DNA from: Octopus sinensis
Taxonomy: Eukaryota
Assembly: GCF_006345805.1 (NCBI RefSeq)
Contig: NW_021833778.1
Coordinates: 1-55,102, forward strand
Direction of reading: 5' to 3'
Length of the DNA: 55,102 nucleotides
Shown: positions 9,717 through 53,086 of the stretch, one piece after another
Layout: the number at the start of each line of letters is the position of its first letter
How positions within the stretch are numbered: position 1 is the first letter of the stretch
Notes under the pieces: generated by a model
The model's input: only the letters and a program-made list of their open reading frames with translations
What the model was told of the DNA's origin: nothing
Databases searched by the model: none
Position numbers and translations under genes: made by a program

Positions 9717-10110
9717 TATACTCTTTTACTTGTTTCAGTCATTTGACTGCGGCCATGCTGGAGCACCGCCTTTAGTCGAGCAAATCGACCCCGGGACTTA
9801 TTCTTTGTAAGCCCAGTACTTATTCTATCGGTCTGTTTTGCCGAACCGCTAAGTGACGGGGACGTAAACACACCAGCATCGGTTGTCAAGCAATGCTAGG
9901 GGGACAAACACAGACACACAAACACACACACATACATATATATACATATATACGACAGGCTTCTTTCAGTTTCCGTCTACCAAATCTACTCACAAGGCAT
10001 TGGTTGGCCCGGGGCTATAGCAGAAGACACTTGCCCAAGATGCCACGCAGTGGGACTGAACCCGGAACCTTGTGGTTGGTTAGCAAGCTACTTACCACAC
10101 AGCCACTCCT
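9717..10110 (-). mobile_element. tRNA-derived SINE, family B
   Basis: GTGGCTGTGTGGTAAG...GGTTCAGTCCCACTGCGTGGCA-CTTGGGCAAGTG head/core; same family as 14221 and 54479. Confidence 0.85.
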
Positions 10111-10568
10111 GGTCTACCAAATCCACTTAGAAGGCTTTGATCGGCTCAAGGCTGTAGAAGACACTTTCCTAAGATGAGTCCCACCACCACACTGCATTAC
10201 GGGATTTCGTGCTTACGGAAATTGTAAAGTATGACCATTAATTTGGGATACGATCTGTAATTTTGCTCTTACAGAAACTCGCATTGCGTAACTATGAAAT
10301 ACGAGTTTCCATAAGAGAAAAATAAGTAATTTAAAACTATATTTTCTTCTTAGCAAAATTGTCACTTGCCTTTTTATAAAGTTCAAAATATATAGCTATC
10401 GATTTTAAAAACTATCATCACGTTACATACATACACTCATGTATATATAATGTACATAATGTGAGTGTGAGTATATATATATATAAGTTCAGCAAAATTT
10501 GGATTCAGATGAATATGGTACTTAATTTAAAGGCACCAGAATTTGATATGGTATTATCCATATAAATC

Positions 10569-10632
10569 ATATAATCAAAATAAGCAACAAGGATAGTGTA
10601 CACTACCTTGGATATCCTTGTTGCTTATTTTG

Positions 10633-10639
<7 letters not shown>
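10569..10639. repeat. Inverted repeat (27-bp arms) ending in (TA)n
   Basis: atataatcaaaataagcaacaaggata ... tatccttgttgcttattttgattatat. Confidence 0.8.
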
Positions 10640-10666
<27 letters not shown>

Positions 10667-11599
10667 TGTGTGTACATGCATGCATGTATGTATGTATTTC
10701 TATCATCAACACCAACACAGCCGCAACAGTGGTATATAAAACGAAGATAAGCAGATTATTTAAAATAAAACATAATGTGGTATCCTAGTGTATTTTAAAA
10801 CTCGAATGACTTGTCTATGAGGATTGACTTGAGACTAAACACCCACTACAAATTACCAAGGACAATATGACCTCCACATCAGCAACAATACCCGCTCACC
10901 ATCCTAACATCGAAACCAATGGCACTCACATCATCACCACCATCAACCCACTAACTCTTGGATCCAACTGGCAACAATAGATATCAGCATGTATGCCAAC
11001 ATGTGTGTATGTGTGTGTGTCCATGAATGTGAGTGAGTGTGAGTATGAAGTGTCTGTGTATTGATGCTTTCAGTCAGAAGTGTAAGGGACGAATTGCATA
11101 TAAAATCTGGCGACCCCTGGTGACCTAACTGTAATAGTACTTTCTCTTCTTTAGTCATTCACATATTTTCTCATTTTCATTATTGCATCAATAAGAATGA
11201 AGCAATTTTTCTCTCTCACAAAACAGATCTTTCCTGGGCCAATTTTTTAAATTGGATATTTGTTGTGGACAATCAAACACCGCTGCTGTTGGATTTGCCT
11301 TCAATTTAAAATGTCTGCAAAGACATCAAGTAGACACGTAGAAGTGCAAAAATGTAGCCGTCAAGGGAATTACAACCGTGTTTCGTGGTCTGCTACCACA
11401 ACAGCTCCTTTATAGGATCCAGTTAGCTCAAGTCATCATCAGGAGGAACCATGTCCGGTTTCGGCCCCTACTCCACTATCGTTTTGACATAGCGGAGGTG
11501 TCTTCAGCTCTGGTGTTGGGTGCATGTCTTCTTTCTTCTGTTCCCTGGCCTCTTCGATGTATCGTCAGCGAGTGTCAGCCGGTGGCTGTATTATACTGG

Positions 11600-17110: not shown

Positions 17111-17435
17111 TAGTTTGATATCTCTGTAACTATCTTTCTCTAAAGCATCACTCCAGCCATTAAGGCATGATATCTTCTGAATTATCTAATTGACTATGTG
17201 GGTAACTAGCACATGTCCTACTCTGCCAGACATTTTAAGCATATATATATTGCAAACAGCTTGCAGATGCAAGTGCTAACAGTTGAAAGTTATATTTGGC
17301 ATGAACTAGGTTTCCTGTCATAAGGTAAGGTAGTGGAGAGAAAATATAAAGGTGGGGGGAAACGAAAAGGAAAGGAAGAAAGACTGGGTAAGAAGGGGAA
17401 ATGACAGGAGTGTTTTGATGGGGTGGAGGAATTGA

Positions 17436-18158
17436 GGATTGAGTCGATTATATCGCCCCCAGTGCGAAACTGGTACTTTATTTATCGACCGCGAAAGGAT
17501 GAAAGGCAAAGTTGACCTCGGCGGAATTTGAACTCAGAACGTAACGACAGACGAAATACCGCTAAGCATTTCGCCCGGCGCACTAACGTGTCTGCCAGGG
17601 AGAATTTTTCCAGCCATAACTTGCCAGTAGACTGTGCACTCACAGGTGAAACACAGAGCAGTAAACAACTGACTTGGCGAAATAAAATATAATTACTAGA
17701 TGCTAGCAAGCTTATTGGCTCATCAGGAGAGAATACTGGCCATTTCAAGGCCTTGCTCTCGATGGCATTTATATATTTCATCTATTAAATTTTTCAATTG
17801 CATTCTTTGACCATTCTAATTCCCACCCACCCTACTTCATTCCTCCACCCCATCAAAACACTCCTGTCATTTCCCCTTCTTACCCAGTCTTTCTTCCTTT
17901 CCTTTTCGTTTCCCCCCACCTTTATATTTTCTCTCCACTACCTTACCTTATGACAGGAAACCTAAACATAGAGGGGACAAACAAGAACAGACGAAGGGAT
18001 TGAGTCGATTATATCGCCCCCAGTGCGAAACTGGTACTTTATTTATCGACCGCGAAAGGATGAAAGGCAAAGTTGACCTCGGCGGAATTTGAACTCAGAA
18101 CGTAACGACAGACGAAATACCGCTAAGCATTTCGCCCGGCGCACTAACGTGTCTGCCA
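17436..18158 (-). mobile_element. Two family A SINE copies (17436-17597, 17965-18158) within a local duplication
   Basis: Identical GAAAGGATGAAAGGCAAAGTTGACCTCGGCGGAATTTGAACTCAG cores; part of the 259-bp duplicated block. Confidence 0.8.
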
Positions 18159-19460
18159 GGGAGAATTTTTCCAGCCATAACTTGCCAGTAGACTGTGCAC
18201 TCACAGGTGAAACACAGAGCAGTAAACAACTGACTTGGCGAAATAAAATATAATTTTACTTCCTGACCACATGCTTCCAGGTTCAATCCCAGTGCATGAC
18301 ATCTTGGGTAGATGCCTTCAGGCGTGCACTCGAGGTGACTAATACTGTAAATAGAATATGGTAAATGGAAACTATGTTAGTATTTGATTGGTGTATTGAG
18401 TTGCGTCCCTTTACGTCAGAATCTGGAATCTGTGAGAAATGTAAAAGAACATGTTCATGCCAAATATATGAGCTAATGAGGAAAGGGCAGCTTTTGATAA
18501 ACTTAGACATTTTTGTGTGAATGTGTTAGCTACATCATCTTTGATATTTATCAAACATCAAGTCTAAGCTAAAACTGAACAACAAACACTTGATAAATTA
18601 TATAAAAAGTTGTACAATATTATATGTACTAGATAATATAAACCATTAAACAAGCCATTAGCAGCCAAATTTTACTCTGCTACCTTGAAACCCAATCAAA
18701 TTATGTAGTCCTAAGTGCATTACATCCAACTACCTTCTTACTTACCTACCTATCTATCTCCCTAACTACTTCCTATTGCTTTATCTCTCTCATAAATAAG
18801 AACATATCTACTGGATCAAAGCTGATATGGGGATTTTCATGAGCAATAACCACAACGAAGACCTCTGTGGGCACTCAAATTGCTAAATACCTAGACTGAA
18901 TGAAGCTAAATAACGTTATTTCTTTTAAAATTTCACTAAGTGTGACATAAGCAGTATTAGTTTAAAATAACAGTTTGTGTATTATACTTAAAACATATAC
19001 ATTGCTGAAAGCCTATTTAACTATGGTAGATAGCATCTCTGACATATAATGTTAAAAAAACAAATTTATCAGTGGAAGATGAAAATCGTCCAGTAGTGGT
19101 GGTAGCATTGCTAAATGCATGTTTCTGCCCCTGAGTGCACTGTCCCTTCTGGGCAATTTTCATTTGCTACTGATATATTTCAGTGTTTTTTAACACTCTA
19201 CGTCTATAAGAGATACAACCTTGAGATGAATACGGTAGTTAATTAGGCTTTCGGAGATGTTTCTGCTTTAAATACGATACATAAATTACTATTTTTAACT
19301 AATACTGCTTCTAATACTAATAAAGTTTCATTCAGCCTATCAGCTAATTGTGACATCACTGTTTTACTATATCAGTAATTTCCAATTTTGTCTCAGCATG
19401 TGGTTGCCAAAGGATACTTGCTGCTGTCAGAGTCCAGAGACAGAAATCTGTATTTAGCAA

Positions 19461-20114: not shown

Positions 20115-20992
20115 CTGGAATGAACAAAAGAGAGAAAAAACAGCATTCAGTAATGACAGCAGCTGAGAGGAGGAGGAATGGCAGAGGAGAGTGTGAAGGA
20201 ATGAGATAGCGCAGTAACAAGCTGTGGGATAAGGAAGAGGATATGAAATATACTGGATTCAAATTTTGGCACAAGGCCAGCAAGTTCAGTGAAGGGAGTA
20301 AGTCGATTGCATCAACTTCAGTGCTCAGCTGGGATTTATTTTATCGACAACAGAAGGATGAATGGCAAAGCTGACCTCAGTGGAATTTGAACTCAAAACC
20401 GTAGCTGAGTAAAGAGGTTCTGTTAATCGTGAGCTAGCAAATGGGTTTGTATGAATCGGGAGACAATACTAAACGAAAAATTGAAAAATCAGAGTGGCTA
20501 TGAACCTGGAGACAAGTCTAAACGAAAAAAAAAAAAAAATGTTTGAGCTAGACAGGGTAATGAGGGAATACTGAAAGAATGAGGGACAATACAATGAGAT
20601 GGAAATTGAAGAATAGAGAAAGAATAAGGATAAGTGCAAGAAAGAAGGTAGTCGTAGCGAGGTTGGACGATTCACTTAACTTTTAGCCATTCATGATCTG
20701 TGCGTATTCTTTAGATATTTTGAAGCGAGTGGGGTTAACGATAAATGCGATCGCTCTTTTATGTATGGCGATGATGGTTTTGGGGAGGGGGGGCATAGAG
20801 GACCATGGCGATGATGGTTATGGGAAGGGGGGACATAGCGAGAGAGAGATAGGGTTAGTTAGAGAGAGAGGTCAAGGGACACGTGACATGCACATATATA
20901 GACATATACATGCACTTATACATATATACATACAGACACATGTATACACATCCACATTTGTTGAGGTGGATTTTCTACAGCTAGATGTCCTT

Positions 20993-21230
20993 ATTTCTTT
21001 ATTTTTTTATTGCCCACAAGGGACTAAACATAGAGGGCACAAACAAGGAGAGACAAACGGATTAAGTCGATTATATCGACCCCAGTGCATAACTGGTACT
21101 TAATTTATCGACCCCAAAAGGATGAAAGGCAAAGTCAACCTCATCGGAATTTGAATTCAGAACGCAGTGGCGGACGAAATACCGCAAAGCATTTCGCCCG
21201 ACATGCTAACGTTTCTGCCAGCTCACCACC
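20993..21230 (-). mobile_element. Family A SINE, full-length with 3' tail
   Basis: Tail reads TTGTGCCCTCTATGTTTAGTCCCTTGTGGGCAATAA on the minus strand. Confidence 0.85.
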
Positions 21231-21271
21231 TAATCGCTAAATGTCCATCACAAGATGTCCTTGTTGCCAAT

Positions 21272-28000: not shown

Positions 28001-28088
28001 AAATTCACCTACCTATATATATGTATATGTGGTACACACACACACACACACATATATAAACATGCGTGTGTATATATGAATATATATA

Positions 28089-28316
28089 TTTCTTTACTAC
28101 CCACAAGGGGCTAAACACAGAGGGGACAAACAAGGACAGACAGAGGGATTAAGTCGATTACATCGACCCCAGTGCGCAACTGGTACTTAATTTATCGACC
28201 CCGAAAGGATGAAAGGCAAAGTCGACCTCGGCGGAATTTGAACTCGGAACGTAACAACAGACAAAATACGGCTACGCATGTCGCCCGGCATGCTAACGTT
28301 TCTGCCAGCTCGCCGC

Positions 28317-28317
<1 letters not shown>
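28089..28317 (-). mobile_element. Family A SINE, full-length with 3' tail
   Basis: Near-identical to 8973-9201; flanked by (TA)n. Confidence 0.85.
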
Positions 28318-28368
<51 letters not shown>

Positions 28369-32349: not shown

Positions 32350-32903
32350 CTTTATATATATAAAACTGAGAATGTGTGTCTGTCTGTCTGTGTGTTTCCC
32401 TAAAACTTGAGAACTACACAACCAATTCTTGAGAACTACACAATCAATTTCATTCAAATTTTACACATGCCTTACTTAGGGTCCATGTAGTTTCATGGGC
32501 AAAAAACAAATGTTCAACTTCTTGCCTAGAGTGAGCCCATAGCAATATCATATCTTCTCCACTATTTCAGTATTACGTGTTAAAAGTGAAACAAAAATAT
32601 TTCTCTATTTTATGTCAGATGCTTTCACTTTAACAATAAAAATAATAATAACAATTGAATTATATGTAGTAAGTAATAATTAAAATCAAACTAAAGTATA
32701 ATATAATCGTAACATACAAAATAAAAATAGCAATTGGTATAAAATTGCATCAATGATTTGAACTTGAATAAGTGGTTTCACATGAATGGGAGTAAATTAA
32801 AAATAAAATTAGCGTGCAGAAATGGAATAGTCCAGATGGGTAATAAAAAATTAAATTAAAGAAAAGACTATTGTCTATAAAGTATACAATGTAGAGAAAA
32901 AAG

Positions 32904-32918
32904 AAGAGCTAACAATTC
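32904..32918 (+). repeat. Left target-site duplication of Tx1 element 1
   Basis: AAGAGCTAACAATTC matches AAGAGCTAACAAGTC at 38317-38331 (14/15). Confidence 0.8.
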
Positions 32919-33107
32919 AATTTAATTGATGTCTGATTTTTCCCATATTTGAAGCGTGGTTTTTTCAGTAATTTGTAAGTAACTGTTTAGTGTTTGTTAC
33001 AGAAACTGTTGTTTTGTTTGAACTTTTGAACGTCTGGTGTAATAACAAAAGATATTGTTATTCCCCTCCTTACGGAGGGGAAAAGTGCTACACGTTGCAT
33101 ACAAAAC

Positions 33108-33147
<40 letters not shown>

Positions 33148-33200
33148 CACTACATTTGTGGAAAAAAATGAACAAAAAAGACATGAAGTCAAAAAAAAAA

Positions 33201-34682
33201 ATGTTGTTTGATGTGGAAACACTGTCCGCTTCAAGTGACGAAGGTTCGCCTTCAAGTGAAGCAGGTTTGCCTGCAGTTAAAGTCATCGAAGGTTCGCCTT
33301 CAAGTGTAGCTGTGTCTGCAGCTAAAATTATTAAAGGTTCGCCTTCGAAAGCTAAAACATACAACTTCGCAGCCACCGCCGGACGGAAGACGGAAGAGAT
33401 AAAGATGGAGGACATAGAATATGAAAAATACAAAACTATGTATGTAAGGGAGGGGAATAATATAAAAGCCACCCTCCCAGAAGAAATTAAAAATGAAACA
33501 CAGAGAAGGATTGTGAGTTACAAATCCTTTTTAATAAAAGAAAAAAAAAATCGAAAGAGTAACAAAGGAACAAGCAGAGAAGTGTCTGCAACCAATATAG
33601 CAAGACATAGACTGTGTGACATGGGGCAAAAAGTACGCCACAATAGTGGTATATTTCAAGAGCGAACAAATGGCAAGAAAGCACTCGATAACCCCAATTA
33701 AGGCGAGTGACATTGTTCTTTTGCCTTCCTATTTGGGGCGGCGGTCCGCCAAAATAAGGGTCGAGGACATACCGCCAGAAATCGAGGCGGAGTGGTTGCT
33801 TCCAGCCTTACTAATGGGGCTGGAAGAAAAAATAAGTGTGATAGCGATAACAAAGGTCAGGATGGAGAATTGGAGAGGTCAATCTCTTCAAGTGACAGTA
33901 CAGGCGGCCCCAGAGACGTTGGAGGAGGTGGCAGAAAATATCAATTTCAGCGATGAAATAAATTTGCGGGTGGTGGTGGAGGAGCGAAAGCCTCGATGCT
34001 ACGGATGTGGTGAGAAAGGCCACATCCGTATAGACTGCCCCACCCGCAAGAAATAAGAAGAGAGAAAAAGGATGGAAGCAGAGGAGAAGAGGAAAAAAGA
34101 GACGGTGGAAGAGAAAACAACAGAAGAAGAAAATGCCTTCACACTGGTGAGGCAGAAAAAAACACCAAAAAGAAAAAATGAAGACTTGAACCCACCCACC
34201 CCATGCACAAGCAAAAAGAAAAATAACACACAGGGGGGGAAATTTACCCCACCCAACCACGGTTCCCCACAAAAGAAAAAAAAAGAGAAGACCCCCCCAA
34301 CCCAACCCGAACAACCACCCCACCCCCACCTCCCAGTATCGAACAATTCCCTCCCCTCCCAAACTACTCCCCGCCGTCCCCCCCATCACCCCCACAAAGC
34401 CCAAAGAAAAAAATGGAAGGATTAGAGATGGTGTACATCTCAATAAACAATGATAACGATAGGTTGGTGAAACTTATTAATGAAGTCCCAACAGCAGAAA
34501 AAATACAAACTTACAGGGTATTGCCCAAAAATGTAGAAGTGAGTAAAATCGACAGATTAAATTACAACATTATACATGAGGAATACCCAAAAGACATCAG
34601 AGGTCCGCGTCTCGACTTGCACGAGTCGTTGTATAATGCGGACTTCCCCCCACGACAAACGGAAAAAAGGAAAACCAACTAA
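33201..34682 (+). pseudogene. Element 1 ORF1 (RRM-like region, CX2CX4HX4C knuckle), frameshifted
   Basis: Pieces 33156-33701, 33616-34056, 34072-34425 and 34413-34682; CYGCGEKGHIRIDC. Several shifts fall at or near A/C homopolymers. Confidence 0.85.
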
Positions 34683-34692
34683 AAGGTAGGTG

Positions 34693-37600
34693 ATGGCTCG
34701 TATTCATGTAGGGTGCATAAATGTGCATGGCCTGGTGACGAACTGGAAGCAAGGGCGCCTCCTAAATGACATCAGGTCACGGGATTTAGATGTTGTTGTT
34801 GCCACAGAAACCTGGTTAAAGGGGCCAAGAGATCCACTCCCGCTGTTCAGCGGTTTTGAGAGAATTATCTCTCCGAGCCGTCTGTCCGGCGGAAGCGGGG
34901 TGTTGGTCCTGTGTAAAAAGAACCAGGTTTCTGAGAAAAAGTTGATTTTTTCAGATCCAGAAGGTAGACTGGTCGTCGTTGATTTGATGTTCAGTAGTCG
35001 TAAGACAATCAGGCTGGTTGCGGTTTACGCACCCCACAGTCAAGGGGAACAAAGTGATTATTTTCGGAACCTTGGAAAGTTTCTGAGTACATCGCATCCT
35101 TTAGTTGTTTTAGGAGACTTCAACACAGTCTACGATGTGCGGGTAGACTGTGAGGGCTCGCGAACAGATAGGAAAGGAAATGCTTGCTTCCAGGATCTAC
35201 TAAGACGTTTCGAGCTGGTAGATCCATATAGACTGGAACATCCGAACGCTCCATTGTGGACATGGTCAAATAGCGACGGATCTATCAAGTCATACATAGA
35301 CAGGATATTAATTAGAAAAGTAGATAAGAAACTAGCTAGGAGTCCACATGCTCCACATGGTCAGCTACAGTGACCACAAGATGGTCACCTGTAGGCTAGA
35401 CATAGATAAGACGAATAGAGGTCCTGGTTACTGGAAACTTAATACGTCCCTTTTGGCGATTAAGGAGTACAGTGACAAGATGAGGTTAATGATTCAGAGG
35501 GCTTTGACTGGAACCATAATTAACAACAAATGGTGGTATGCCCTCAAGCGAGCCATCAGATATGAGTCCATTAGATATAGTATAGATCTAGTAGCTAGAG
35601 AGGCTAGAAGGGAATCAGCACTAGTTAAGGACTTAGAGGAAGCAATGCGAACTGGCACGGCAGCCCAGGTGAGGGTCAAGAGACTGGTTTTGAACCAGCA
35701 CCTTGAAGCCAAACACATGGGTTGCATTGTCAGGGCTAGACAACGTGCAATGGGGAGCGAAGGAATTAATGCCGCAAGATGGGCCCGAGTGGTGGAAGCC
35801 CAACGTGGCAACGATGCCACAATTCGATCTTTGACGAACCAACAAGGTAAGTTGATAGACGAGCCCGAGGAGATGTGTGAGGCTTTTCAGGACCACTTCG
35901 CCCGGCTCTTTGGGGGGAGCGGCAGACCGGATAGGAGGAGGGGCCTAACGGACCTCCTCCGACGGGCTGCCGCACCTCTCGGAGCAGGACGCGAAGTGTA
36001 GTGAGGAGCCGATCACGCCTGGGGAAGTAATAGAGGCCATGGCTGACTGCGGCACGGGTAAGGCACCAGGACTGGATGGTCTACCTTACGAGCTTTATAA
36101 AAGTATGCCGGACTTGTTCAGGGACTTACTGGTGAACGTCTACGCGAACTGGCAGCAGAATGGGTTTATTCCCAGATCTGTGCGCCGGGGAGTGGTGACA
36201 CCAATCAGGAAGGACTCGGACAAGGGGGATGTCATTGATAATTTTAGGCCCATCACTCTGCTTAACGCAGAGCTGAAGATTTTGGCCAAAGTGTTATCAA
36301 ACAGATTGGCGCGTGTCGCGGATGGACTAATAGGGAAGGCACAAACGTGTGCCGTACCTGGCAGGTCCATTCAGGATAATCTCCATCTAATTAGATACAG
36401 TATAGAGGGAATTAATAGCGATCCCGGCAAGGGAGGGGCAGTGGTCCATTTAGACCAATCAAAAGCTTTCGATAGGGTCGACCATCATTACCTGGTGTCT
36501 GTTCTGGCTCAGTTCGGCCTGGGTCTTGGCTTCCTCAGGTGGATCATCGAAATGTACGATAACGTCGACTCGGTAGTTCGGGTGAACGGCTTTATTTCTA
36601 AGCTGTTCAGAGTCAAATGCTCGGTTCGTCAAGGATGCCCACTCTCCCCGCTTTTGTATGTAGTGGCTCTCGAGCCACTGCTGCGAAAACTGAGTGGTAT
36701 CCCGAGGCAGCCAGGTCGTGGAATGTCGGTTTCGGCGTACGCGGATGACATCACTATCATCGTGACTGAAGTGGACCTCCTACGTAAAGTAGGCAAGGCC
36801 ATAGAGGTTTACGAGACGGTGACAGGAGCAAAAGTTAATCGCGAAAAGTCAGTCGGCTTGCAGCTCGGCACCTGGAGAGGCAAGTCGATGCCTTCAGACA
36901 GCGTCGTGGGACGTTGGACGGAGGGTCCGATTAAGTTGCTCGGGGTTTGGTTCGGACCAGACCTCCAAATAGAGAAGAACTGGAGCGAGGTATCGAGCAG
37001 GGTGGCTGCAGTAGCCAAGACCTGGTCTTGGCGGTGGTTATCCCTGAAAGGTAGGGCGGAGGTAGCCAATGTGTTCATCGCATCGGTGATCACCTACCGC
37101 CTTACCGTTGTGCCTTGCCCGGATTCGTGGTTGACCAAGTTGGAAAGACAGCTTTTCACTTTTTGTGGAAGAGCTCGAAACCACTTGTGAGACGCTCTGT
37201 TTGTTGTCAAAAACTGTTAAAGGGTGGACTAGGGATGCCGTGGCTAATGATGCGCAGAAATGCGCTGAGGTTAAGGCATCTGTGGCTCCATCTGGATGGT
37301 GAACGGGTGTGGTCTCCGTTGGCGAAACAGATGTTTCCCAATTTCACCAGTTTTGGTGGACGGGAAGCCTGGTATAATCACAGATCGAAGTTGGATACAT
37401 GGTATACGGAATGTCGCAAGGCACTCCGACTATTCCGTCGCTCGGGCAATGCCTGCGGCAGTGGTTCTACCGCTGTTTTCTATAGAGGGTTTGTAGAGGC
37501 CGGTTGCGATGATACATTAGGGGAAACCCTAGGTTTCGACGATAATCAGCTGGCCAGTCTGTTCCAACGTACATTTGGGCCGAGGACCCTGGATAATTTT

Positions 37601-38089
37601 CAGAAGTCCTTAGCTTGGCAGTGCTACCAAGGAGCCTTACCTGTTCATGATAAACTCGCAAGGCACGGTGGCCAAGTCAGCCCGACCTGTCCGAGGTGTG
37701 GGCGAGACAGGGAAACCGTCTCGCACGCGGTTGTGCAGTGCTCGGAGGTGGCAGACATGTGGGTTTTTGCCGAACAACTGTTGTCAAGTGGAGGAAGAGT
37801 ACAGCTATCGACTGAATCCATTGTAAAAATTGACCCACCGGATTTCTTAACGAAAGAAGGTAAGAATTGTTTTCTCTCTGTGGTTTCAATTGCGAAACAG
37901 GCAGTATGGAAGACGAGGATGAAAGGGGTGATAGCAGGCAACTTCATCTCTGGTTCTAGTCTGATGGAATATTTTAAATTCCACCTAAAAAGACAAATAG
38001 AACTAGAGAGGAGGGGCCTGAGTAAGAAAGTGTTCGATGAAAGATGGAAGAATGTTGTGAGTAAAAGGACCCTCATGAATGCGAGGTAA
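34693..38089 (+). pseudogene. Element 1 ORF2 (APE endonuclease, reverse transcriptase, Zn finger), three frameshifts
   Basis: VGCINVHGL, ATETW, LGDFN, SYIDRI (APE); KAPGLDGL, NFRPITLLN, LDQSKAFDRVDH, RQGCPLSP, AYADD (RT); CPRCGRDRETVSHAVVQC. Confidence 0.95.
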
Positions 38090-38316
38090 GCCGGAAAAAA
38101 AAGAAGGAAAAAAACCTAAGATCAGTGTCGTGACGGGGTTCGTGGGGTCCGTAAGCCCGCCCCACTCCATCTGTGAAATTGTTTGTGTAAAAAATGTCCT
38201 ATCATCCGAATTATATATTCATTTGTAAATTTTTAATAGACCCCAACGCATATTCATGTAAAATCATTTGTGATGTTCTGTCTTTATATGTATAACCGTA
38301 TGGTGAATAAAGAAAT

Positions 38317-38343
38317 AAGAGCTAACAAGTCCAGTCTGTTATA
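38317..38343 (+). repeat. Junction: overlapping TSDs of elements 1 and 2
   Basis: AAGAGCTAACAAGTCCAGTCTGTTATA contains the right TSD of element 1 (38317-38331) and the left TSD of element 2 (38324-38343). Confidence 0.8.
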
Positions 38344-38579
38344 CACCAGTCTGTTTTGTCATTTGCTGTTTACTACCGGTTTGTGAATTTAACTATTGTT
38401 ACTTTGTTTTATATATTGTGTATTTTGTGTAAAAACTGTTATTAGCCTTCGCGCGAAGGCTACGTATTAAAATTCCCCCCCCACGGGGGAATTGTTTTGA
38501 AACAATTATTGTGAAACAGTTTAAAATATACACAAAAGGCTTGCGAAGCCAAAATCTTTTGAAGGCTTGTTAAAGCCAA

Positions 38580-39881
38580 TTGAAAAGGCTTGTAAAGCCA
38601 CATCCAGAGATAGAGACTCCTATCTCATATTCACCTGTATCAGGTGAAGAAAGTTCACCGGCGGTGACGCTGAAAATAGAAGAGGCCCCAGCGAAGAAGT
38701 TCACAGAAGTTGCAGGAAAAAAACAAAAAAAAATCAACACGGATAAGAGCAACTTAGAAAAGTATGAAGCACTTTTGAAAAAGGAAGGAAATGAAGTAAC
38801 AGTGGAATGAGACGTCAGAAAGACAGAAGAAGTAGAAAGAAAAAGGATTATCTACAAAACACACAATACAACGATGAAAAGCATTCAAAGAGTGGAGGAA
38901 AAAAAAAAAGAGAATTGTCTAAAGACAATATGGAAAGACATCACGTATATAAACCGTGGCAGAAAGTTTGGAACGGTTCAGGTGAGGTTCAGGACTGAGG
39001 AGATAGCCAAGAAGCTATCAACCAAACCTCTAAAAGCGGAGAATATAGTCCTCCTCCCCCAGTACATAGGCAGAAGGACCTCAAAAATATTAATAAAAAA
39101 TATTCCGCCAGAAGCGAACGCCACATGCCTAGTGGCAGCAGTGATGTTAGGCCTGGAGGACAAGATCACTATCCTCCAGGCTACAGTAGAAGAGGAGGGG
39201 TATTGACAAGGCCAATGCATCTCAATGGCGATACAGGCGGAGGTCCAAACGTTAGAAGAAATACCAGAGATATTGAGGATCAGCGAGGAGGAGAGGGTGC
39301 TAGTGTTTGTGGAGGGCAGAAAGCCGAGGTGCTTCGGCTGCAGTAAAAAGGGGCACGTAAGAGCGGAGTGCCAACCTAAACCGCAGGAAGCAGCACCGCC
39401 AGAAAAAGAAAAAACAGAAGAGAAAACAGAAGAGAAAACACCAGAAACTACAGAAACCAAAGAGGCAACAGAAACAACAAGTGGCGAAGAAAAGGAAAAA
39501 GAGGAGGGATGGTCAAAAATTACCAAAAAAAACCGGAAAACAGAAACCACCCCTCAGAAAGAGAGCCAAAAAAAGAGGAAAGAAGTGACAAATACATTTA
39601 TGGCCATTAAGGCTGCCAACAACAGGCTAATTAATGTTTTGGCAGCCATGGCCAAGGTGGAGAAAATTAAAAAAACAAAAGACTGTATTGTTTATAGAAT
39701 AGGCCGGAAGGATTACGGACGGATAAAATCCGAATTCTTTCACGACGTGGGCCCTCTGAGATTGGACATATCTCCATATTTATACGAGGGCCTGCGTCGG
39801 ACTCCCCCACGAGCTCAGGAAAAAAATAAAAGTGAAGAAGAAGACGAAAAACAAGTCGAACAAGTCGAACCACTGATATAA
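38580..39881 (+). pseudogene. Element 2 ORF1, disrupted
   Basis: Pieces 38580-38810, 38874-39206 and 39225-39881. TGA at 39204-39206 aligns to TGG (Trp) in element 1. CFGCSKKGHVRAEC knuckle. The start codon is uncertain. Confidence 0.85.
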
Positions 39882-39889
39882 GGTAAGTT

Positions 39890-42800
39890 ATGGATTGCAT
39901 TTATGTTGGTTGTTTAAATGTGCGCGGCCTGGGATCAAGCTGGAAGCAAGGTCGCTTCCTTAATGATATCAGGTCGTGTAATTTGGATGTTATTGTTGCT
40001 ACAGAAACCCGGTTAGAGGGGCCAAGAGGTCTACTCCCGCTGTTTGACGGCTACGAGAGTTTTTTCTCTCTGGCCAGTCCTACAGGCGGGGGTGGGGTGT
40101 TGGTCCTATTAAAAAGAAACCGGGCAGAAAAACCCGGTTTCTTTTTAATAGACCAACACCCCACCCCCGCCTGTAGGACTGGCCAGAGAGAAAAAACTCT
40201 CGTAGCCGTCAAACACGCAGTAGACCTCTTGGCCCCTCTAACCGGGTTTCTGTAGCAACAATAACATCCAAATTACGCGACCTGATATCATTAAGGAAGC
40301 GACCTTGCTTCCAGCTTGATCCCAGGCCGCGCACATTTAATTTTTTCAGACCCAGAAGGTAGGCTGGTCGTCATGGATTTGACGTTCAGTAACAGTAAAG
40401 TTATCAGACTGGTTGCAATTTACGCACCCAACCAAAAAGGGCAAAGTGATTATTTTCGAGAACTGGAAAACTTTCTTGGTACTTCGCATTCATTAGTTGT
40501 GCTAGGAGACTTTAACACAATTTGCAAAGCGGATGTAGATTGTGTTGGCTTGCGTCCAGATAGAAAAGGTAACATTGGCTTCCTGGAACTGCTAAGCCGC
40601 TTTGAGCTAGCAGATCCTTATAGGTTGGAATTTCCGAATGCTCCATTGTGGACATGGTCAAGCAGCGACGGATCTTCCAGGTCATACATAGATAGGATAC
40701 TAATTAGAAAAGTAGACAGAAAAATAGCTAAGTGTCCACAGTTTTACCTGGTCAGCTACAGTGATCATAAAATGGTCACCTGTAAGCTTGACATAGATAA
40801 GGTTAAAAATAGAGGCTCCGGTTACTGGAAACTTAATACATCCCTTTTGGCGATTAAGGAGTACAGAGACCGGATTAGGACTATAATTCAGAGGGCGCTA
40901 TCTGGTGCCATCATTAATAACAAATGGTGGTATGCCCTCAAGCGAGCCATCAAATTCGAGTCAATTAGATATAGCATAGGATTAGTGGCTAGAGAGGCTA
41001 GGAGGGAATCTACTCTAGTTAAGGAATTAGAGGAAGCCTTGAAAACTGGCTCTGCGGTTCAGGTGGCGGCTAAGAGACTGGCGTTAAACCAGCACCTCGA
41101 GGCCAAACACATGGGCTGCATTGTCAGGGCTAGGATCCGCGCAATGGGTTGTGAAGGAATCAACGCTGTGAGATGGGCCCGAGTGGTGGAAGCTCAGCAT
41201 GGTAATGACGCCACGATTCGATCTATGACGAACCAACAAGGTGAGTTGATAAACGAGCCCGAGGAGATGTGTGAGGCCTTTCAGGAGCACTTCGCTCAGC
41301 TTTTCGGTGAGTGCGGAGGACTGGATAGGAGGAGGGCCTTTAAGGACCTCCTCGACGGGCTGCCGCGCTTATCGGGGCGAGATGCGGAGGGCTGTGAAGG
41401 GCCAATCACGCCTGGGGAGGTGGTTGAGGCGATGGCGGACTGCTGCGCGGGCAAGGCGCCGGGTTTAGATGGTCTACCCTATGAGTTATATAAGAGTATG
41501 CCAGACTTGTTCGGGCACCTACTGGTGGAGGTCTATGCGAACTGGCAGCAGAACGGGTTCATACCCAGATCTGTGCGCTGGGGAGTAGTGACACTCGTCA
41601 GAAAGGACCCGAGCAAGGGGGTGTACATTGATAATTTCAGGCCCATCACTCTGCTAAACACAGAGTTGAAGATTTTGGTCAAAGTGTTATCGAAAAGATT
41701 GGCGCGTGTCGCGGATGGTCTGATCGGGGAGGCACAGACATGTGCCGTTCCCGGCAGAACCATTCAGGATAATCTCCATCTTATGCGGTACACTACAGAG
41801 GGGTTTAATAGTGATTCTGGCAAGGGTGGGGCACTGGTCCATTTAGACCAATCTAAAGCGTTCGATAGGGTCGACCATCGCTACCTGGTATCTGCCCTGG
41901 CACAGTTGGGGCTGGGCCTTGGCTTCCTCAGGTGGATTATCCAAATTTACGACAACATCGACTCGGTAGTTCGGGTGAACGGCTTCTTGTCGAAGCCGTT
42001 CAACATCAAACGCTCGGTTCGTCAAGGGTGTCCGCTCTCCCCGCTTTTGTACGTGATGGCTCTTGAGCCATTACTGCGAAAACTCAGCGGCATCTCGAGA
42101 CAGCCAGGTAGTGGAAAATCGGTGTCAGCGTACGCGGATGACATCACCATCATCGTAACCGAAATGGATCACCTACATAAAGTAGGCAAGGCCATAGAGG
42201 TTAACGAGATGGTGACAGGAGCAAAAGTTAATCGTGAAAAGTCAGTCGGCTTGCAACTCGGCACCTGGAGAGGCAAGTCGATGCCTCCTGACAGCATCGT
42301 GGGACGTTGGACGGAGGGTCCGATTAAGTTGCTAGGGGTTTGGTTCGGTCCAGACCTCCAAATAGAGAAGAATTGGGGTGAGGTATCGAGCAGGGTGGCT
42401 GCAGTAACCAAGACCTGGTCTTGGCGGTGGCTATCCCTGAAAGGGAGGGCAGAGGTAGCCAATGTGTTTATCGCATCGGTTATCACCTACCGCCTTTCCA
42501 TCGTTCCTTGCCCTGATTCGTGGTTGATCAAGTTGGAAAGACAGCTCTTCTACTTCTTGTGGAAGGGCGGGAAACCACTTGTGAAATGCTCTACTTGCTG
42601 TCAACAACCGTTAAAGGGTGGGCTAGGGATGCCTTGGCTGATGATGCGCAGACATGCGCTGAGGTTAAGACATCTGTGGCTCTACCTGGATGGTGAACGG
42701 GTGTGGTCTCCGCTAGCAAAACTGATGTTTCCCAAGTTCACTAGTTTCGGTGGATGGGAAACCTGGTTGAATCGTAGATCGAAACTAGGCACATGGTACA

Positions 42801-43326
42801 CGGAGTGTCGCAAGGCTCCCCTGCTATTCCGTCGCTCGGGCAACGCCTGCGGTGGGGGTTCCACCACATTCTTCTACCTGTTCGGGATAAACTCGCAAGG
42901 CACAGTGGCCAAGACAGTCCGATATGTCCAAGATGCGAGCGGGATAGGGAAACCGTCCCGCACGCTATTGTTCATTGTTCGGTTGTGTCTGAGGTGTGGG
43001 TTTATGCCGAACAGCTGTTGTCAAGCACACGAAGAGTACAGCTGTCGACTGAGTCTATTACAAAAATTGACCCACCAGATTTCCTTGCGAAAGAAGGTAA
43101 GAATTGTTTACTCGTTGTAGTAGCAATTGCGAAAGAGGTGATATGGAAGACGCGAATGAAAGGTTTACGGTCAGGCAAGTTCATATCCGGCCCTGGTTTG
43201 ATGAATTACTTCATCTTTCACCTGAAAAGGAAGATAAGGCTGGAGAGAAAATGCCTGTCTAAGAGAGTGTATGAAGAACGATGGAAAGATGTAGCACGAA
43301 AGTTGCGAGTGAATGATACCACATAA
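39890..43326 (+). pseudogene. Element 2 ORF2 (APE-RT-Zn finger), disrupted by a fold-back duplication and an internal deletion near 42870
   Basis: VGCLNVRGL, ATETR, LGDFN, SYIDRI, KAPGLDGL, LDQSKAFDRVDH, QGCPLSP, AYADD, CPRCERDRETVPHAIVHC. Confidence 0.95.
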
Positions 43327-43562
43327 ATGTAAAACTAGACGAAACCAAAGTATCAGTGGGGAGGCGAGGCTCGTGGGGTCCGAGCTAAACCTGCTCCCAC
43401 TCCATCCGTAATGTCTTCCGGTCTGTTCTCCATTCGATTTTTTCTATTTTTGTAATTTTTGAAAATTTTAAAATTCGCCTTTTTTGTAAACCCATTCGTA
43501 TATCTGACCCCACATCAGATTGTATTGTCCCCTCTATGTTCGTCCCTTGTGGGTAATAATAA

Positions 43563-43582
43563 AACAATTCCAGTCTGTTATA
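43563..43582 (+). repeat. Right target-site duplication of Tx1 element 2
   Basis: AACAATTCCAGTCTGTTATA matches AACAAGTCCAGTCTGTTATA at 38324-38343 (19/20). Confidence 0.85.
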
Positions 43583-43812: not shown

Positions 43813-43929
43813 TGAGTGGACATACAAAAGAAAGGGTACTCAACATTTATTTGGAGTTACATGCATTATTCAAAACTGTCTGAATCAAATTGTTTTAGAT
43901 ATATAATATATCGGACATCCCAAACATAC

Positions 43930-44770
43930 ATATTGGAGACCACAGATTACAAGAGGTGGAGAAGTTTACCTATCTGGGCTCTACCGTCACCTACAACCTA
44001 TCCCTTGACGCTGAGCTCAATATACGCATTGGCAAGGCAGCTGCTGCGATGGCCCAACTCTCCAAATGGGCTTGGGACAACAATAAGCTGACCAAGACCA
44101 CGAAAATGAAGATCTACCAGGCATGTGTACTCAGCACTCTACTGTATGGAAGGGAGACCTGGACGCTATACACACGCCAAGAGCGTCGCCTAAACATCTT
44201 TCACCTGCGCTGCCTTCGAAAATCCTCCGCATCAATGGCAGAATCATATCCCCAACAAAGATGTCCTCAGGCAAGCAGGAATACCAAGCATGTTTGCACT
44301 CCTCACACAAAGGACGTATGAGATGGCTTGGGCATGTTAGCCGTATGAAAGATGGCAGAATCCCCAAGGACATACTCTACGGAGAGCTTGCTAGGGGTAC
44401 TAGGTCTGTGGGTAGACCGATCTTACGTTACAAGGATGTTTGCAAAAGGGACATGAAGGCCTGCAACATCAATATTAGCGGTTGGGAGGCAGTTGCCGGC
44501 AACCGTGGAGAATGGCGACGTACCGTAAAAGTGGAATACAAAGGAGTGACAGAGAGAGAGAGGAGAAATGGAAAGAAAGGAAGAGACGTAAACAAGAGAC
44601 TATGGCACAACAACCAGCCAGGAACAGTCTTCGCTACATTTGCGGTACCTGCCAGAGGAGTGTTTGTCCAGGATAGGACTACACAGCCACAGCAGGAAAT
44701 GTATCAGGACATGAAATATAAAAGCCGGACTAGACTACTCATGCGCAACTCCATTGTCTCCCGAGACAGA
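43930..44770 (+). mobile_element. 5'-truncated RTE (BovB-like) LINE
   Basis: VEKFTYLGS, RIGKAAAA, VLSTLLYGRETW, RWLGHVSRM..RIPKDILYGEL..GRP..RYKD; 3' end ccattgtctcccgagacagaaaggatgcca then (TA)n. Confidence 0.9.
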
Positions 44771-44777
44771 AAGGATG

Positions 44778-44853
<76 letters not shown>

Positions 44854-45400
44854 GAGAGAGAGAGAGATTGTGTGTGTGTACGTAGGTATGTGTACATGTA
44901 TGTATTTATAAATTCACACGCATACATATGTATATATTTGTCTATATACATACATTTATGTTAGTGCAAAGCTCTCTCCACACCACCACCACCACCACCA
45001 ACAACAACAACGTCCCAATCTCAACCACTTCAAGACACACAAACCATAAATAGTCAGGTCAATGACATTTATATCAAATTACTCTCTGACATCATTGGGT
45101 TTGCTATGTTTACAATACACCATTGAACAACAGTAAAGTTATTTAAGGTAAAGAGAGCAAATGAATGGTTATATCCTGCATTAAATCCTAGTTTAATTCA
45201 CTTGTTGTTGCTAAGCTAAGGTCAGCCTGGATCCAACATTCTTTGAAAATATTCCATCAATGACCATCTTTTATTCAGACATAATGTATCTAGGACTTTG
45301 TAGAGTTGTTGTTTAACCATAGGAGGTCAATCCTGATGAAGCAAACCTATGATCAAAGTCATTCCAGCATGGCCTTTCTGTCTTTTAATTACAAACAGTG

Positions 45401-45530
45401 CAGGTATGGCAGTGTAATAAGAAGTTTGCTTCCCAGGCACATGGTTTTGGGTTCAGTCTCACTGCTGCCTCAGGCTGACCAAAGCCTTGCGAGTAGATTT
45501 GGCAGAGAGAAACTGAAAGAAGCTGGCCAT
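45401..45530 (+). mobile_element. Partial family B SINE
   Basis: AGAAGTTTGCTTCCCAGGCACATGGTTTTGGGTTCAGTC head and GACCAAAGCCTTG..GTAGATTTGG. Confidence 0.6.
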
Positions 45531-45581
45531 GTGTGTACATGTATGTAGTCTGTGCATGTGTGTATATATATATATATATAA

Positions 45582-47400
45582 TACTATTAAATGGAATAAA
45601 TGACAATATACAATTCACGACGGACCACAACGAAAAAGAATTACCATTTTTAGACATCCTCATTAAGAAAACTGGCAACAAAATAGAGACAGATATCTAC
45701 TATAAACCGACAGACTCTAAACAGTACCTAACCTTTGATTCATGCCACCCACGACACACTAGAATGAATGTCCCTTTTTGTTTAGCTAGAAGGATTTGCA
45801 CCATAATATCAGACACAAACACCCAACACACACGTCTCCAGGAACTTAGAACCACACTCACAAATAGAAACTATCCACAGCCCCTAATAGACAGTGCAAT
45901 CCAACGGGTACTTAAATTAAGTATAGAAGACCTGAGACAAACAAAACCAAAAAAGAAAGAACAATTAAAAACCCTTCCCTACATCTCTACACACAACCCA
46001 CTCAACAATGAGGCCTTCAACACCATACTACAAAGCACAGCCCTACTAAAGGAGACCCAAAGATGAACCGGATCCTCGAAACACACACCATCATTAAAAG
46101 TAAACGGCAACCAAAATCCTTGAAAAGGATTTTAACCCAAGCTACACTGCACTCAACATCAACCACAAAACCAGCAGTTAGAAAATGTGGAAGGCCCAAC
46201 TGCGGAATCTGTGTCATCTTGAAAGAAGGATCAGAATTTATACTGGAACAAGGCCACCAGTTCACCATTAGAACAAACTTCACCTGCGCATCAGAAAACT
46301 TAATTTACATCATAACATGCGCAGGCTGCAATAGGCAGTATATAGGCCATACAAAAAATAGCTTACGTAACAGGATGGCGGTGCATAAATCACAAATTAG
46401 AAACCTGATTACCGCAAAATACCGGTCAGCGGACACATAGATAGATGTGCTGGAAATGTAAATCCGAAATTTACAACTAACCCGCTCTATAAATTCAGTG
46501 ACAACGCAACCTTCACACAACGCCAAAATAAAGAACTATATTTCATAAAAAATTTAGACCAAGTTTAAACACCCTGGGCCAAGAATACTAAAACAAAAGA
46601 TAAGTTCTCCGAAAAGGAGAAGCAAAATTCCACCACGGCCGCTACTTTAAACAGACACTCGCTCTGACGGAAATATGCCTTAGTAAAAAAGGAAAAAAAT
46701 TCTTTCGTGCAAATCTGACCCTGATACATACGATACAACTAAGGGTCAGACCCGATTCTGATTGGTCAACAAGTTGATGACGTCTAGCTCTGCTAGAATG
46801 GACAGGATACAAACAGGGGACAGTCATTAGTCAGAATATTGATGACGTCCTTTTCTGCTTGACTAGTCACCTAACAAGTACAGACAGGGGGCAGATCTAA
46901 TGTAGCTATAAGTCGTGATTGGGCAGAATCTGGATGACGTCCTGTTCTGCTTGACTAACGAAGCGACTGGTCAAAACAGGAAACAAACAAGAGGCAGTTA
47001 TAATGCAGCGATTGGACAAAATAATGATGACGTCCCGTTCTGCTTGACTAAAGCCACCTAACGAAACGATTGGTCAAAACGTTGATGACGTCACGCTACG
47101 CTGGATTGACCACCTAACAGGCATTATAAAACCGAGCACTTCACAAAACCCACTAGAACCACCCAGCGAACATCCACCATGGGTCATCACAATTGCTTAA
47201 GGTAAAAATGAATTCCTCGCTCTTTCGGAAACATCAATCTTCTGTATTGACCGCTTTCCACCACTTTGATCTGTTTTTTGTATTGAATACGTATCGCCAC
47301 CGTGGGCCACTGCATCGAACACTTTGAACATATACTTCAAACTATATATCAACTATACATGAACTATATATCAACTATACATGAACTCTAAGATGTCTGA
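45582..47400 (+). mobile_element. 5'-truncated Penelope-like element (RT C-terminus, GIY-YIG endonuclease, pseudo-LTR)
   Basis: LPFLDILI, IYYKPTD, SCHPRH, LARRICTI, RNYP (PLE RT/thumb); CGRPNCGIC, TCASENLIYIITCAGCNRQYIGHT (GIY-YIG). Starts directly after (TA)n. Confidence 0.92.
46761..47131 (+). promoter_or_regulatory. Pol II promoter-like array: five (inverted CCAAT-N12-TGACGTC) modules plus TATAAAA
   Basis: ATTGG at 46761, 46918, 47011 and 47069 (ATTAG at 46826). TGACGTC at 46778, 46843, 46935, 47028 and 47086 (full TGACGTCA in the last). TATAAAA at 47125-47131. Confidence 0.65.
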
Positions 47401-52089: not shown

Positions 52090-52808
52090 CTGGTGGCAAA
52101 CTGGTAGAATAATTAGCATGCCGGACGTAATGCTTTGCAACATTTCACCAATCTTTACATTCTGAGTTCAAATTCTTCTGCTGAGGTTCACTTTGCCTTT
52201 CATCATTGCAGGGTCAGTGAAATAAGTACCAGCTGAGTATTGAGGCAGATGTAATCAAATTTCCCCTCCTTTCAAAAGCTGCTATTATTGGTTCTGGGCC
52301 AAAATTTGAAACCATTAATATGGTAGTGGTAGTGGATTAGCAAAAGTATCCAGCTCTTCAAAGTTCTAAAAAGGAGTAAAAGTAAAGCTGACCTTGGTGA
52401 GGTTTTACTTCAGAACATAAAGAGCCATAAGAAAGCATTTTGTCTAATATGCAAACGATTTTTCCAGCTGGCCACCTAAGTAATAATAATAATAATAATA
52501 ATTATAATAATAATAATAACAATAATAATAATAATAATAATAATGATGATAACAATAATAATACTAATAATAATAATTCTTTCTACGGGAAGTACAAGGC
52601 CTCAGATTTGGAGTAAGGGATTAACTTGATTACATTGGCTCCAGTGTGTAACTGGTACTTATTTAATTGACCCCAAAAGGATGAAAAGCAAAGTTGACCC
52701 TGGAGGAAGTTGAATTCAGAATGTAAAGACGGATGAAATGCCGCTGAGCATTTTGTCTGGTGACCTAACGATTCTCTTAGCTTGCTGACTTACAACTACT
52801 ACTACTAC

Positions 52809-52841
<33 letters not shown>

Positions 52842-53086
52842 ACAATAATACTAAACACAATAATAATAATCCTTTCTGCTATAGGTACAAAGCCAGCAAT
52901 TTCTGGGGTTGGGTATCTCGATTACATTGACCCCCCCCAGCACGCAACTGGTCCTTATTTCATCAATCTTGAAACAATGAAAGGTAAAGTCAACCTTGGC
53001 AGAATTTGAACTCAGAATGTGCAGATGAATGAAATACCACTAATCTTTTGGCCCAGCATGCTAACAATTCTGCCAGCTCACTGCCT
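52090..53086. mobile_element. Three diverged family A SINEs (52090-52310 +, 52590-52785 -, 52870-53086 -) around (AAT)n/(TAC)n
   Basis: Recognisable ctttgcctttcatc / atgaaaggtaaagtcaacc cores. Further degenerate copies lie near 1215-1400, 1800-1990, 2335-2480 and 20265-20400. Confidence 0.7.

Follow-up and report, generated by a model that had tools for sequence, protein, structure and literature searches.

The stretch analysed here, referred to as the window, comprises 55,102 nucleotides of the Octopus sinensis genome (contig NW_021833778.1, positions 1 to 55,102) and is AT-rich, retroposon-rich eukaryotic DNA. Two long interspersed nuclear elements (LINEs), E1 and E2, lie head-to-tail on its plus strand, and copies of a short interspersed nuclear element (SINE), termed family A, are dispersed elsewhere. 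An earlier note on this DNA had proposed that E2 ends in the same 3' tail as the family A SINE and that the SINE may be mobilised by an enzyme of the LINE, of Tx1 type, through recognition of this tail.

E2 (38344-43568, plus strand) is 5.2 kb long, matches the Pfam families Exo_endo_phos, RVT_1 and zf-RVT, has a 3' untranslated region (UTR) of about 240 nt, and is bounded by an exactly repeated 14-bp target site duplication (TSD), TCCAGTCTGTTATA, at 38330-38343 and 43569-43582 (plus strand). Its second open reading frame (ORF2), containing the apurinic-type endonuclease, the reverse transcriptase (RT) and zf-RVT, is split over at least three frames (39890-40255, 40316-43120 and 42793-43326). 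E1 (32916-38316, plus strand) is 5.4 kb long, with its ORF2 in at least four frames and a 3'UTR of 227 nt. Its 12-bp TSD, AAGAGCTAACAA, is found on the plus strand at 32904-32915 and 38317-38328, the right copy standing 1 nt ahead of the left TSD of E2. Both ORF2s contain the same three domains and are interrupted by frameshifts and stop codons; E1 and E2 are decayed, dead copies. The two are sister families, with 84% nucleotide identity across 2.5 kb of ORF2 and collinear 3'UTRs. Further copies of either family were sought within the window, and none was found.

The 3' tail module of E2 occupies 43520-43568 on the plus strand and consists of the box TCTATGTT (43533-43540), the hairpin GTCC[CTTGT]GGGT (43542-43554) and the A-rich terminus AATAATAAAACAAT (43555-43568); positions 43520-43563 read TTGTATTGTCCCCTCTATGTTCGTCCCTTGTGGGTAATAATAAA. 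Three family A SINEs, all on the minus strand, have a complete tail. The copy at 20993-21252, with the tail ...TCTATGTTTAGTCC[CTTGT]GGGCAATAAAAAAATAAAGAAAT at 20993-21046, is flanked by the 10-bp TSD AAGGACATCT (21253-21262 and 20983-20992). The copy at 8977-9200, with the tail ...TCTGTGTTTAGCCC[CTTGT]GGGTAGTAAAGAAAT at 8977-9025, is slightly truncated at its 5' end, and the third, at 28088-28318, sits in a (TA)n tract. When the whole SINE was compared with the window by BLAST, it matched 43520-43567 at 85.7% over 49 columns (E 1.1e-8), and the E2 tail is 85-87% identical to the SINE tails. Local alignment of the E2 tail with the three SINE tails gave scores of 28-33, as opposed to 7.5 +/- 1.5 for shuffled sequences, none of the 2000 shuffles scoring as high. 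The counts on which the earlier note had relied, 32 of 36 columns against the 20993 SINE tail and 31 of 36 against the 8977 copy, were both reproduced by direct reading.

After the E2 tail come CAAT and then the right TSD. Because the TCCAGTCTGTTATA that directly follows the tail recurs just before the 5' end of E2, the tail lies within the TSD-bounded element. It is the last feature before the right TSD, and no second LINE terminus or second TSD was seen upstream of 43520; therefore, it was inserted as part of the LINE cDNA. The claim that the tail belongs to the LINE and adjoins its right TSD is thus borne out, as a single TSD pair encloses both. The tail of E1 (38269-38316, plus strand) reads ...TCTTTATATGTATAACCGTATGGTGAATAAAGAAAT and ends in ...AATAAAGAAAT, the same terminus as the SINE. 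The hairpin that had been named as an analogue in this element, ACC-GTAT-GGT, is indeed present at 38295-38304, followed by GAATAAAGAAAT, and is flanked by TCTTTAT (38281-38287) and ATAAAGA (38307-38313), which could pair with each other. The SINE tail is nearest to E2 in its proximal part and nearest to E1 at its terminus, which suggests an unsampled sister LINE bearing both features.

Relatives of these elements were found by a protein search with the C-terminal ORF of E1, and the genomic loci were then fetched. This ORF matched LOC118766888 of O. sinensis at 60% identity and a protein of Argonauta hians at 54%, and the LINE families of the two species are related to E1 and E2 at 54-62% protein identity. 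The O. sinensis LINE (locus L012) ends in GCTGTATTGTCCCCCTCTATGTTTGGGCCCTTGTGGCTAATAAAGAAAT, followed by unique flank, and the full-length A. hians LINE (locus L013) ends in CTGTATCGTCCCCTCTATGTTTTTGCCCTTGTGGCTAATAAAAGAAAT. A second, 5'-truncated LINE end in the A. hians locus reads ...TCTCTTTTTTGGACCCTTGTGGTCAATAAAAGAAT, containing GACC[CTTGT]GGTCAATAAAAGAAT. In all four full LINEs the 3'UTR is 221-238 nt long, and a homologous module stands at every end. When the O. sinensis and A. hians LINEs are compared, identity reaches 90% in the terminal 48 nt, as opposed to 61% in the final 600 nt of the coding region and 52% in the proximal part of the 3'UTR; between E2 and either of them the values are 76.5% for the tail, 59-68% for the coding sequence and 54-62% for the UTR. 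No other nucleotide stretch of these LINEs is conserved as well as the tail. Used as a BLAST query, the window SINE matches both LINE tails directly, the O. sinensis tail at 86.5% over 37 nt and the A. hians tail at 83.7% over 43 nt; in a global comparison, the former is 82% identical to the SINE tail over 50 columns, through the terminal AATAAAGAAAT.

Three LINE copies of the same lineage, namely the O. sinensis element and the full-length and 5'-truncated A. hians elements, thus carry the tail at the same position, and the tail is fixed rather than a one-off feature of E2. It appears to be an integral, nucleotide-conserved part of the LINE lineage, and its conservation would span deeply diverged octopods, judged by the coding identity of about 60%. 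Other searches reached less far towards the tail: with the E2 ORF2 protein the nearest match had 58% identity, the best contig (L001) ends 113 nt past the stop codon, and contigs L014 and L010 stop short of the tail region. Tail-pattern scans of genome contig and viral contig collections returned no match. When JGI metagenome contigs were scanned by exact pattern for a conserved E1/E2 3'UTR motif, three matches in GC-rich bacterial sequences were obtained, which we rejected as chance occurrences.

The same tail is found on SINEs of A. hians. Around 25 instances of the tail lie within the 20-kb A. hians locus, all on plus-strand elements, among them the LINE ends described above. One SINE (4470-4726) has the same central body as the window SINE and carries the tail, and a short SINE forms three tandem tail-bearing units (4893-5362), whose heads gave only sub-threshold matches to the Rfam tRNA model (18-22 bits). 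SINEs with different heads and bodies thus bear the tail of the local LINE, as is classically seen where several SINEs are parasites of a single LINE. At the same locus, seven tail-bearing elements are arranged head-to-tail in one orientation (4470-11190, plus strand) in the order CORE-type SINE, 5'-truncated LINE end, (ATT)n tract, three short tRNA-like SINE units and near-full-length LINE, the last beginning a few bases past the final SINE tail.

The window SINE shows a B-box-like GAGTTCAAATTCC, and its body is presumably akin to a CORE domain. The Rfam tRNA model gave no match to a window SINE copy at E<=1, ARAGORN predicted no tRNA, and an Rfam scan of the window at the gathering threshold returned no matches. 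In a further family A copy (17962-18159, minus strand), which has a local duplicate at 17436-17598, the tail stops after TCTATGTTTAG. The surroundings of these two (17380-17660 and 17900-18220, minus strand) have identical 5' flanks and tails that are truncated or replaced; the identical flanks point to a local segmental duplication and not to independent insertions. The 20993 SINE has 22 extra bases, TGTGATGGACATTTAGCGATTA (21231-21252, minus strand), between the 5' TSD and the usual head, which may stem from 5' transduction or from read-through of the source copy. A second SINE subfamily, at 52615-52753 and 52918-53081 on the minus strand and at 2332-2491 on the plus strand, combines the family A head and central body with a different tail, ...GGCCTTGTACTTCCCGTAGAAAGAATTATTATT, that ends in an (ATT)n microsatellite, which indicates tail exchange within this SINE group. 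Possibly this second tail represents a remote form of the LINE-type tail, since A. hians LINE ends also precede (ATT)n.

The termini of the elements agree with a defined start of reverse transcription. The sequence ...GAAAT closes E1, three of the SINE copies and the O. sinensis LINE, with the TSD or the flank directly after, and poly(A) of the mammalian L1 type was not found on any LINE or SINE copy examined. Precise ...AAUAAAGAAAU ends without poly(A) are a signature of a stringent LINE/SINE partnership. The TSDs measure 12 bp for E1, 14 bp for E2, 10 bp for the 20993 SINE and about 6 bp for the 8977 SINE, and the O. sinensis LINE has a long duplication beginning GATGTTCTACCACA. Since the TSDs of E1 (AAGAGCTAACAA), E2 (TCCAGTCTGTTATA) and the O. 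sinensis LINE (GATGTTCTACCACA...) are unrelated sequences, strict site specificity of the LINE is not seen, and the dispersal of the SINEs would be no contradiction. The concern, voiced in the earlier note, that dispersed SINEs would need to be reconciled with a site-specific LINE therefore largely dissolves.

On the other side of this question stand the closeness of E2 to the end of E1, the head-to-tail cluster in A. hians and the tandem arrays of distant relatives. E2 has the orientation of E1 and was inserted only 13 nt beyond the E1 3' terminus. Its first bases, CACCAGTCTGTTTTGTCA, repeat 10 nt of its own target TCCAGTCTGTTATA, the O. sinensis LINE begins similarly with CACCAGCTTTGTCA, and a relative from the TARA metagenome (L002, 4790-4826) has TTCCAGTCTTTTCC located 4 nt past its AATAAAG (regions compared: window 38317-38360 and 43565-43582; L012 3500-3560). 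Possible reasons are that the 5' end of the LINE is conserved, that 5' joining is guided by microhomology, or that sites next to existing copies are preferred. We also considered TCCAGTCTGTT after E2 as a conserved target or as the 5' end of a third LINE copy; it stands as an observation, because the alignment of the downstream flank with the LINE 5'UTRs was unconvincing beyond a 10-mer. About 30 nt upstream of the E1 site, GGGTAATAAAAAATTAAATTAAAGAAAAG (32838-32876, plus strand) has the look of a decayed tail end (cf. GGGCAATAAAAAAATAAAGAAAT in the 20993 SINE); if it is a real tail remnant, the insertion of E1 likewise took place just downstream of an older tail. Among more distant relatives with about 43% protein identity, full-length units stand head-to-tail in tandem with a period of about 6.8 kb in one contig (L003/L004; ENA ERZ21867824, ctg88761c), and the last 55 nt of another (L009; TARA scaffold_156) repeat its first 55 nt; the 3'UTRs of these tandem-array relatives are about 700 nt long.

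The earlier note had described a CCC-TTGT-GGG stem-loop in both the LINE and the SINE tail. The hairpin is present, whereas its description needed revision: it is better read as 4 bp around CUUGU, GUCC[CUUGU]GGGU in E2. Its general form is NNNN[CUUGU]NNNN, with a loop that is invariant outside E1, where the hairpin is ACC[GUAU]GGU. The stems are GCCC/GGGU and GUCC/GGGC in the window SINEs, GUCC/GGGU in E2, GGCC/GGCU in the O. sinensis LINE, and GCC/GGC and GACC/GGUC in the A. hians LINEs. A CUUGU hairpin is also found near the 3' end, just upstream of AAUAAA, in three metagenomic relatives from ENA sample ERZ21867824 and TARA with about 43-50% protein identity: AGGC[CUUGU]GCCU in L003, AAGGC[CUUGU]GCCUU in L005 and UGAC[CUUGU]GUCA in L009. 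In the RT region, such relatives are about as far from E1 as a cuttlefish protein is. Each of their 3'UTRs contains three to four CTTGT sites, of which the last one alone is paired.

In a family-level alignment of 12 LINE and SINE rows, 93.8% of the cells were paired, compared with 65% after shuffling (0 of 500 as high), and the covariation score was 0.769 versus 0.219 (0 of 500), with changes on both sides in three of the four pairs. Slid registers, used as a control, gave 25-48% pairing. The UCUAUGUU box and AAUAAAGA are pairable in 85% of the cells, perfectly so in E1 (UCUUUAU/AUAAAGA), and no significant covariation was detected between them; an outer helix formed by the two is a possibility that the base complementarity suggests.

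As for the enzyme, the best match of the E2 ORF2 among solved structures in the Protein Data Bank is human L1 ORF2p (E 5e-59, residues 11-791), R2 proteins matching far more weakly (1e-22). The E2 ORF1 has a CCHC motif, and the E1 ORF1 matches zf-CCHC above threshold. No match to Transposase_22, the L1-type ORF1 family, was found in ORF1, which has a CCHC knuckle at its end instead. By its sequence features, the E1/E2 lineage belongs to the L1 superclade. The combination of an ORF2 with endonuclease, RT and C-terminal zinc-binding domain and a CCHC-type ORF1 is shared by plant-type L1 elements, so it is not diagnostic of Tx1. The LINE is possibly of Tx1 type, as it had been labelled; protein searches with ORFs of the E1/E2 lineage returned no named Tx1 homologue. 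Indirect evidence comes from the annotation of Octopus vulgaris, where L1-Tx1 is the sole L1-type class, with a mean insertion of 5.4 kb, the same as E1 and E2. SINEs are plentiful among octopus repeats, 13 families of L1-Tx1 were active recently, and other active LINE clades occur as well (PMC13282606).

Taken together, these data led us to the following model. The RNA of an octopod L1-superclade, L1/Tx1-like LINE would end not in poly(A) but in a fixed module of about 45 nt, composed of the UCUAUGUU box, the 4-bp hairpin with the CUUGU loop and the AAUAAAGAAAU terminus, which could pair back onto the box. For the window SINEs and at least two SINE types of A. hians, the module has become the 3' tail. 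The LINE ORF2 protein is presumed to recognise the tail hairpin by the loop, which does not vary, and by a stem whose sequence is free to vary, acting in cis on LINE RNA and in trans on SINE RNA, and to start target-primed reverse transcription at the ...GAAAU terminus, so that the SINEs would be copied. We are highly confident that the tail common to the LINE lineage and the SINEs is homologous and maintained by selection. That the lineage mobilises the SINEs through tail recognition is likely on the strength of tail sharing; the protein-RNA recognition and the trans-mobilisation would operate as in UnaL2/UnaSINE1 and the maize and Chlamydomonas L1-clade pairs. The proposal of tail-mediated SINE mobilisation is accordingly supported by tail homology, fixation, covariation, ends and TSDs, with mobilisation as the inferred step and an L1-superclade element as the likely enzyme source. 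Instead of the decayed E1 or E2, a sister family probably served as the active driver, because the O. sinensis-type tail fits the SINE better at the terminus. In a broader form, towards which we lean only slightly, an animal L1/Tx1-superclade lineage with stringent recognition of the CUUGU hairpin and AAUAAAGAAAU, ancient in cephalopod LINEs, would be the autonomous partner of the octopod-specific SINE expansion (~8-12% of octopus genomes) and could explain the head-to-tail pile-up.

Several points weigh against tail-mediated mobilisation. The E2 terminus, TAATAATAAAACAAT, departs from the AATAAAGAAAT consensus, and the E1 tail is collinear with the SINE tail but only weakly similar to it, scoring 13-15 with 8-26 of 2000 shuffles as high. 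Fixation was judged on sister families, E2 itself being a single copy. Three rows of the family-level alignment came from a scan that required a stem, which introduces an ascertainment bias, although only one of the three to four CTTGT sites per UTR qualifies. In a copy-level alignment of 21 rows, mostly decayed SINE copies, pairing was 85% and covariation was not significant, and the folding energy of single tails was no better than that of shuffles (z -1.5 to +0.9). The tail comparison covered LINEs of the L1 superclade, the RTE, CR1 and Dong-R4 elements of the genome lying outside it; however, the O. sinensis LINE tail matches the SINE up to the terminal AATAAAGAAAT, which leaves little room for a better match from another LINE clade.

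Other origins of the shared tail have to be considered. The low complexity of the last ~12 bases is all that speaks for a chance likeness of two A/T-rich 3' ends, and we give this no credence in view of the E value of 1e-8 in the window, the absence of any equal among 2000 shuffles, the position of the match in the GC-containing part and its recurrence in the fetched LINE tails of O. sinensis and A. hians. A 5'-truncated SINE might instead have landed at the end of E2, or a single template switch might have made a chimera, in a family without a tail of its own. E2 is indeed the only such copy, no other of E1 or E2 being in the window, and its tail is as like the SINE tails as the SINE copies are to one another. 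Yet a single TSD encloses LINE and tail with no separate terminus or TSD upstream of 43520, the E2 3'UTR matches those of E1 and the O. sinensis and A. hians LINEs in length, with a homologous module ending all of them, and independent LINE families from both species carry the tail. Because three other copies of the lineage have it at the same position, a one-off SINE fragment or chimera is excluded in practice, and we regard it as very improbable.

The direction of transfer could also be the reverse, an ancestral octopod LINE having taken over the tail of a SINE that already existed. Retroposons are known to swap tails by template switching (PMC4824008), and the body of the SINE represents an old and widespread type. 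Against this, the 3'-end CUUGU hairpin occurs in the LINE relatives of about 43-50% identity, whose tails are otherwise different, which places the hairpin deep in the LINE clade, and SINEs with unrelated heads and bodies have the tail in common. We consider the reverse direction quite unlikely, and the shared-tail partnership holds whichever way the tail was transferred. It is unlikely, too, that the tail was kept for a reason other than reverse transcription, such as RNA stability or 3'-end processing by RNA polymerase II through the polyadenylation signal AAUAAA and an upstream element, with the SINEs being LINE 3' fragments moved by RTE, CR1 or R4 elements or by non-specific trans action. 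The terminus does contain a canonical AAUAAA, single-sequence folding is unexceptional, other LINE clades are active in octopus (PMC13282606), and a sister SINE subfamily in the window has a different tail ending in (ATT)n. However, SINEs of the RNA polymerase III type need no polymerase II signal, yet several independent SINE types keep the whole module with its hairpin. Genomic copies stop a few bases past AAUAAA without poly(A), which implies that reverse transcription starts at a defined internal site, and the covarying stem with its invariant loop is as in proven stringent tails.

Just downstream of E2, at about 43816-46440 on the plus strand, lies a Penelope-like element. Its ORF at 46063-46440 encodes a GIY-YIG nuclease domain (Pfam E 2.8e-6), and its upstream ORFs (44123-44911 and 45533-46066) have no Pfam match.

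That SINEs and LINEs may have a 3' tail in common is well established in principle. In octopus genomes, SINEs make up one of the largest fractions, and their expansion counts as a defining trait of genome evolution in octopods. The octopus transposable element literature that we found, including PMC13282606, does not name a LINE partner for these SINEs. A shared, maintained tail points to a specific source of enzyme for them and offers a testable RNA signal consisting of an invariant loop and a covarying stem. If the partnership is true, an animal case joins the few L1-clade LINEs that recognise a specific 3' end, those of maize, sorghum and Chlamydomonas (PMC3472496), with consequences for the question of whether the L1 superclade began with stringent recognition. 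It would also be of practical use for better classing of "unclassified" octopus SINEs and for dating LINE/SINE co-amplification. Among the 58 SINE/LINE pairs of a published survey (PMC3747384), none is from a mollusc and none involves an animal L1 or Tx1 LINE. The octopod pair is possibly the first animal stringent pair of the L1/Tx1 type, and Repbase or Dfam may already contain it.

Among known systems, UnaL2/UnaSINE1 of eel is described as an experimentally proven stringent pair (Kajikawa and Okada, 2002, as cited in PMC4824008 and PMC3747384). The octopod elements resemble it in the shared 3' tail of about 50 nt, the stem-loop with conserved loop and variable stem, and the defined terminus other than poly(A). 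Unlike UnaL2, which belongs to the L2 clade and terminates in a short tandem repeat, the octopod LINE is of the L1 superclade, ends in AAUAAAGAAAU, has a hairpin of only 4 bp and is known from its sequence. Stringent pairs of the L1 clade come from maize and sorghum and from Chlamydomonas (Ohshima, 2012, PMC3472496; PMC3747384, Table 1). In LINE1-1_ZM/ZmSINE2-3 and L1-1_CR/SINEX-3_CR, as in octopods, an L1-clade element has a conserved 3' hairpin region of about 50 nt with compensatory changes, which SINEs, tRNA-type in those cases, share; in contrast to these plant and green-algal pairs, the octopod pair occurs in an animal, is possibly of Tx1 type and ends without poly(A) or (T)n.

A further comparison is with Tx1-Mar/SINEU of crocodilians, in which a Tx1-group LINE has been proposed to mobilise a SINE (Kojima, 2015; PMC4494074), so that in both cases a candidate Tx1-group LINE would move an animal SINE family. 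There, the link consists of a shared target, Mariner-N4_AMi, and of snRNA-derived 5' heads that are shared as well; the elements have poly(A) tails, and no shared 3' tail was reported (PMC4494074). In the octopods it is the 3' tail that links LINE and SINE, and a target sequence common to them was not seen. With the relaxed mammalian L1/Alu system, the octopod elements have in common the ORF2 architecture and TSDs of 10-14 bp. They differ from that poly(A)-dependent system in lacking poly(A), in having a specific tail common to LINE and SINE, and in a CCHC-bearing ORF1 rather than Transposase_22.

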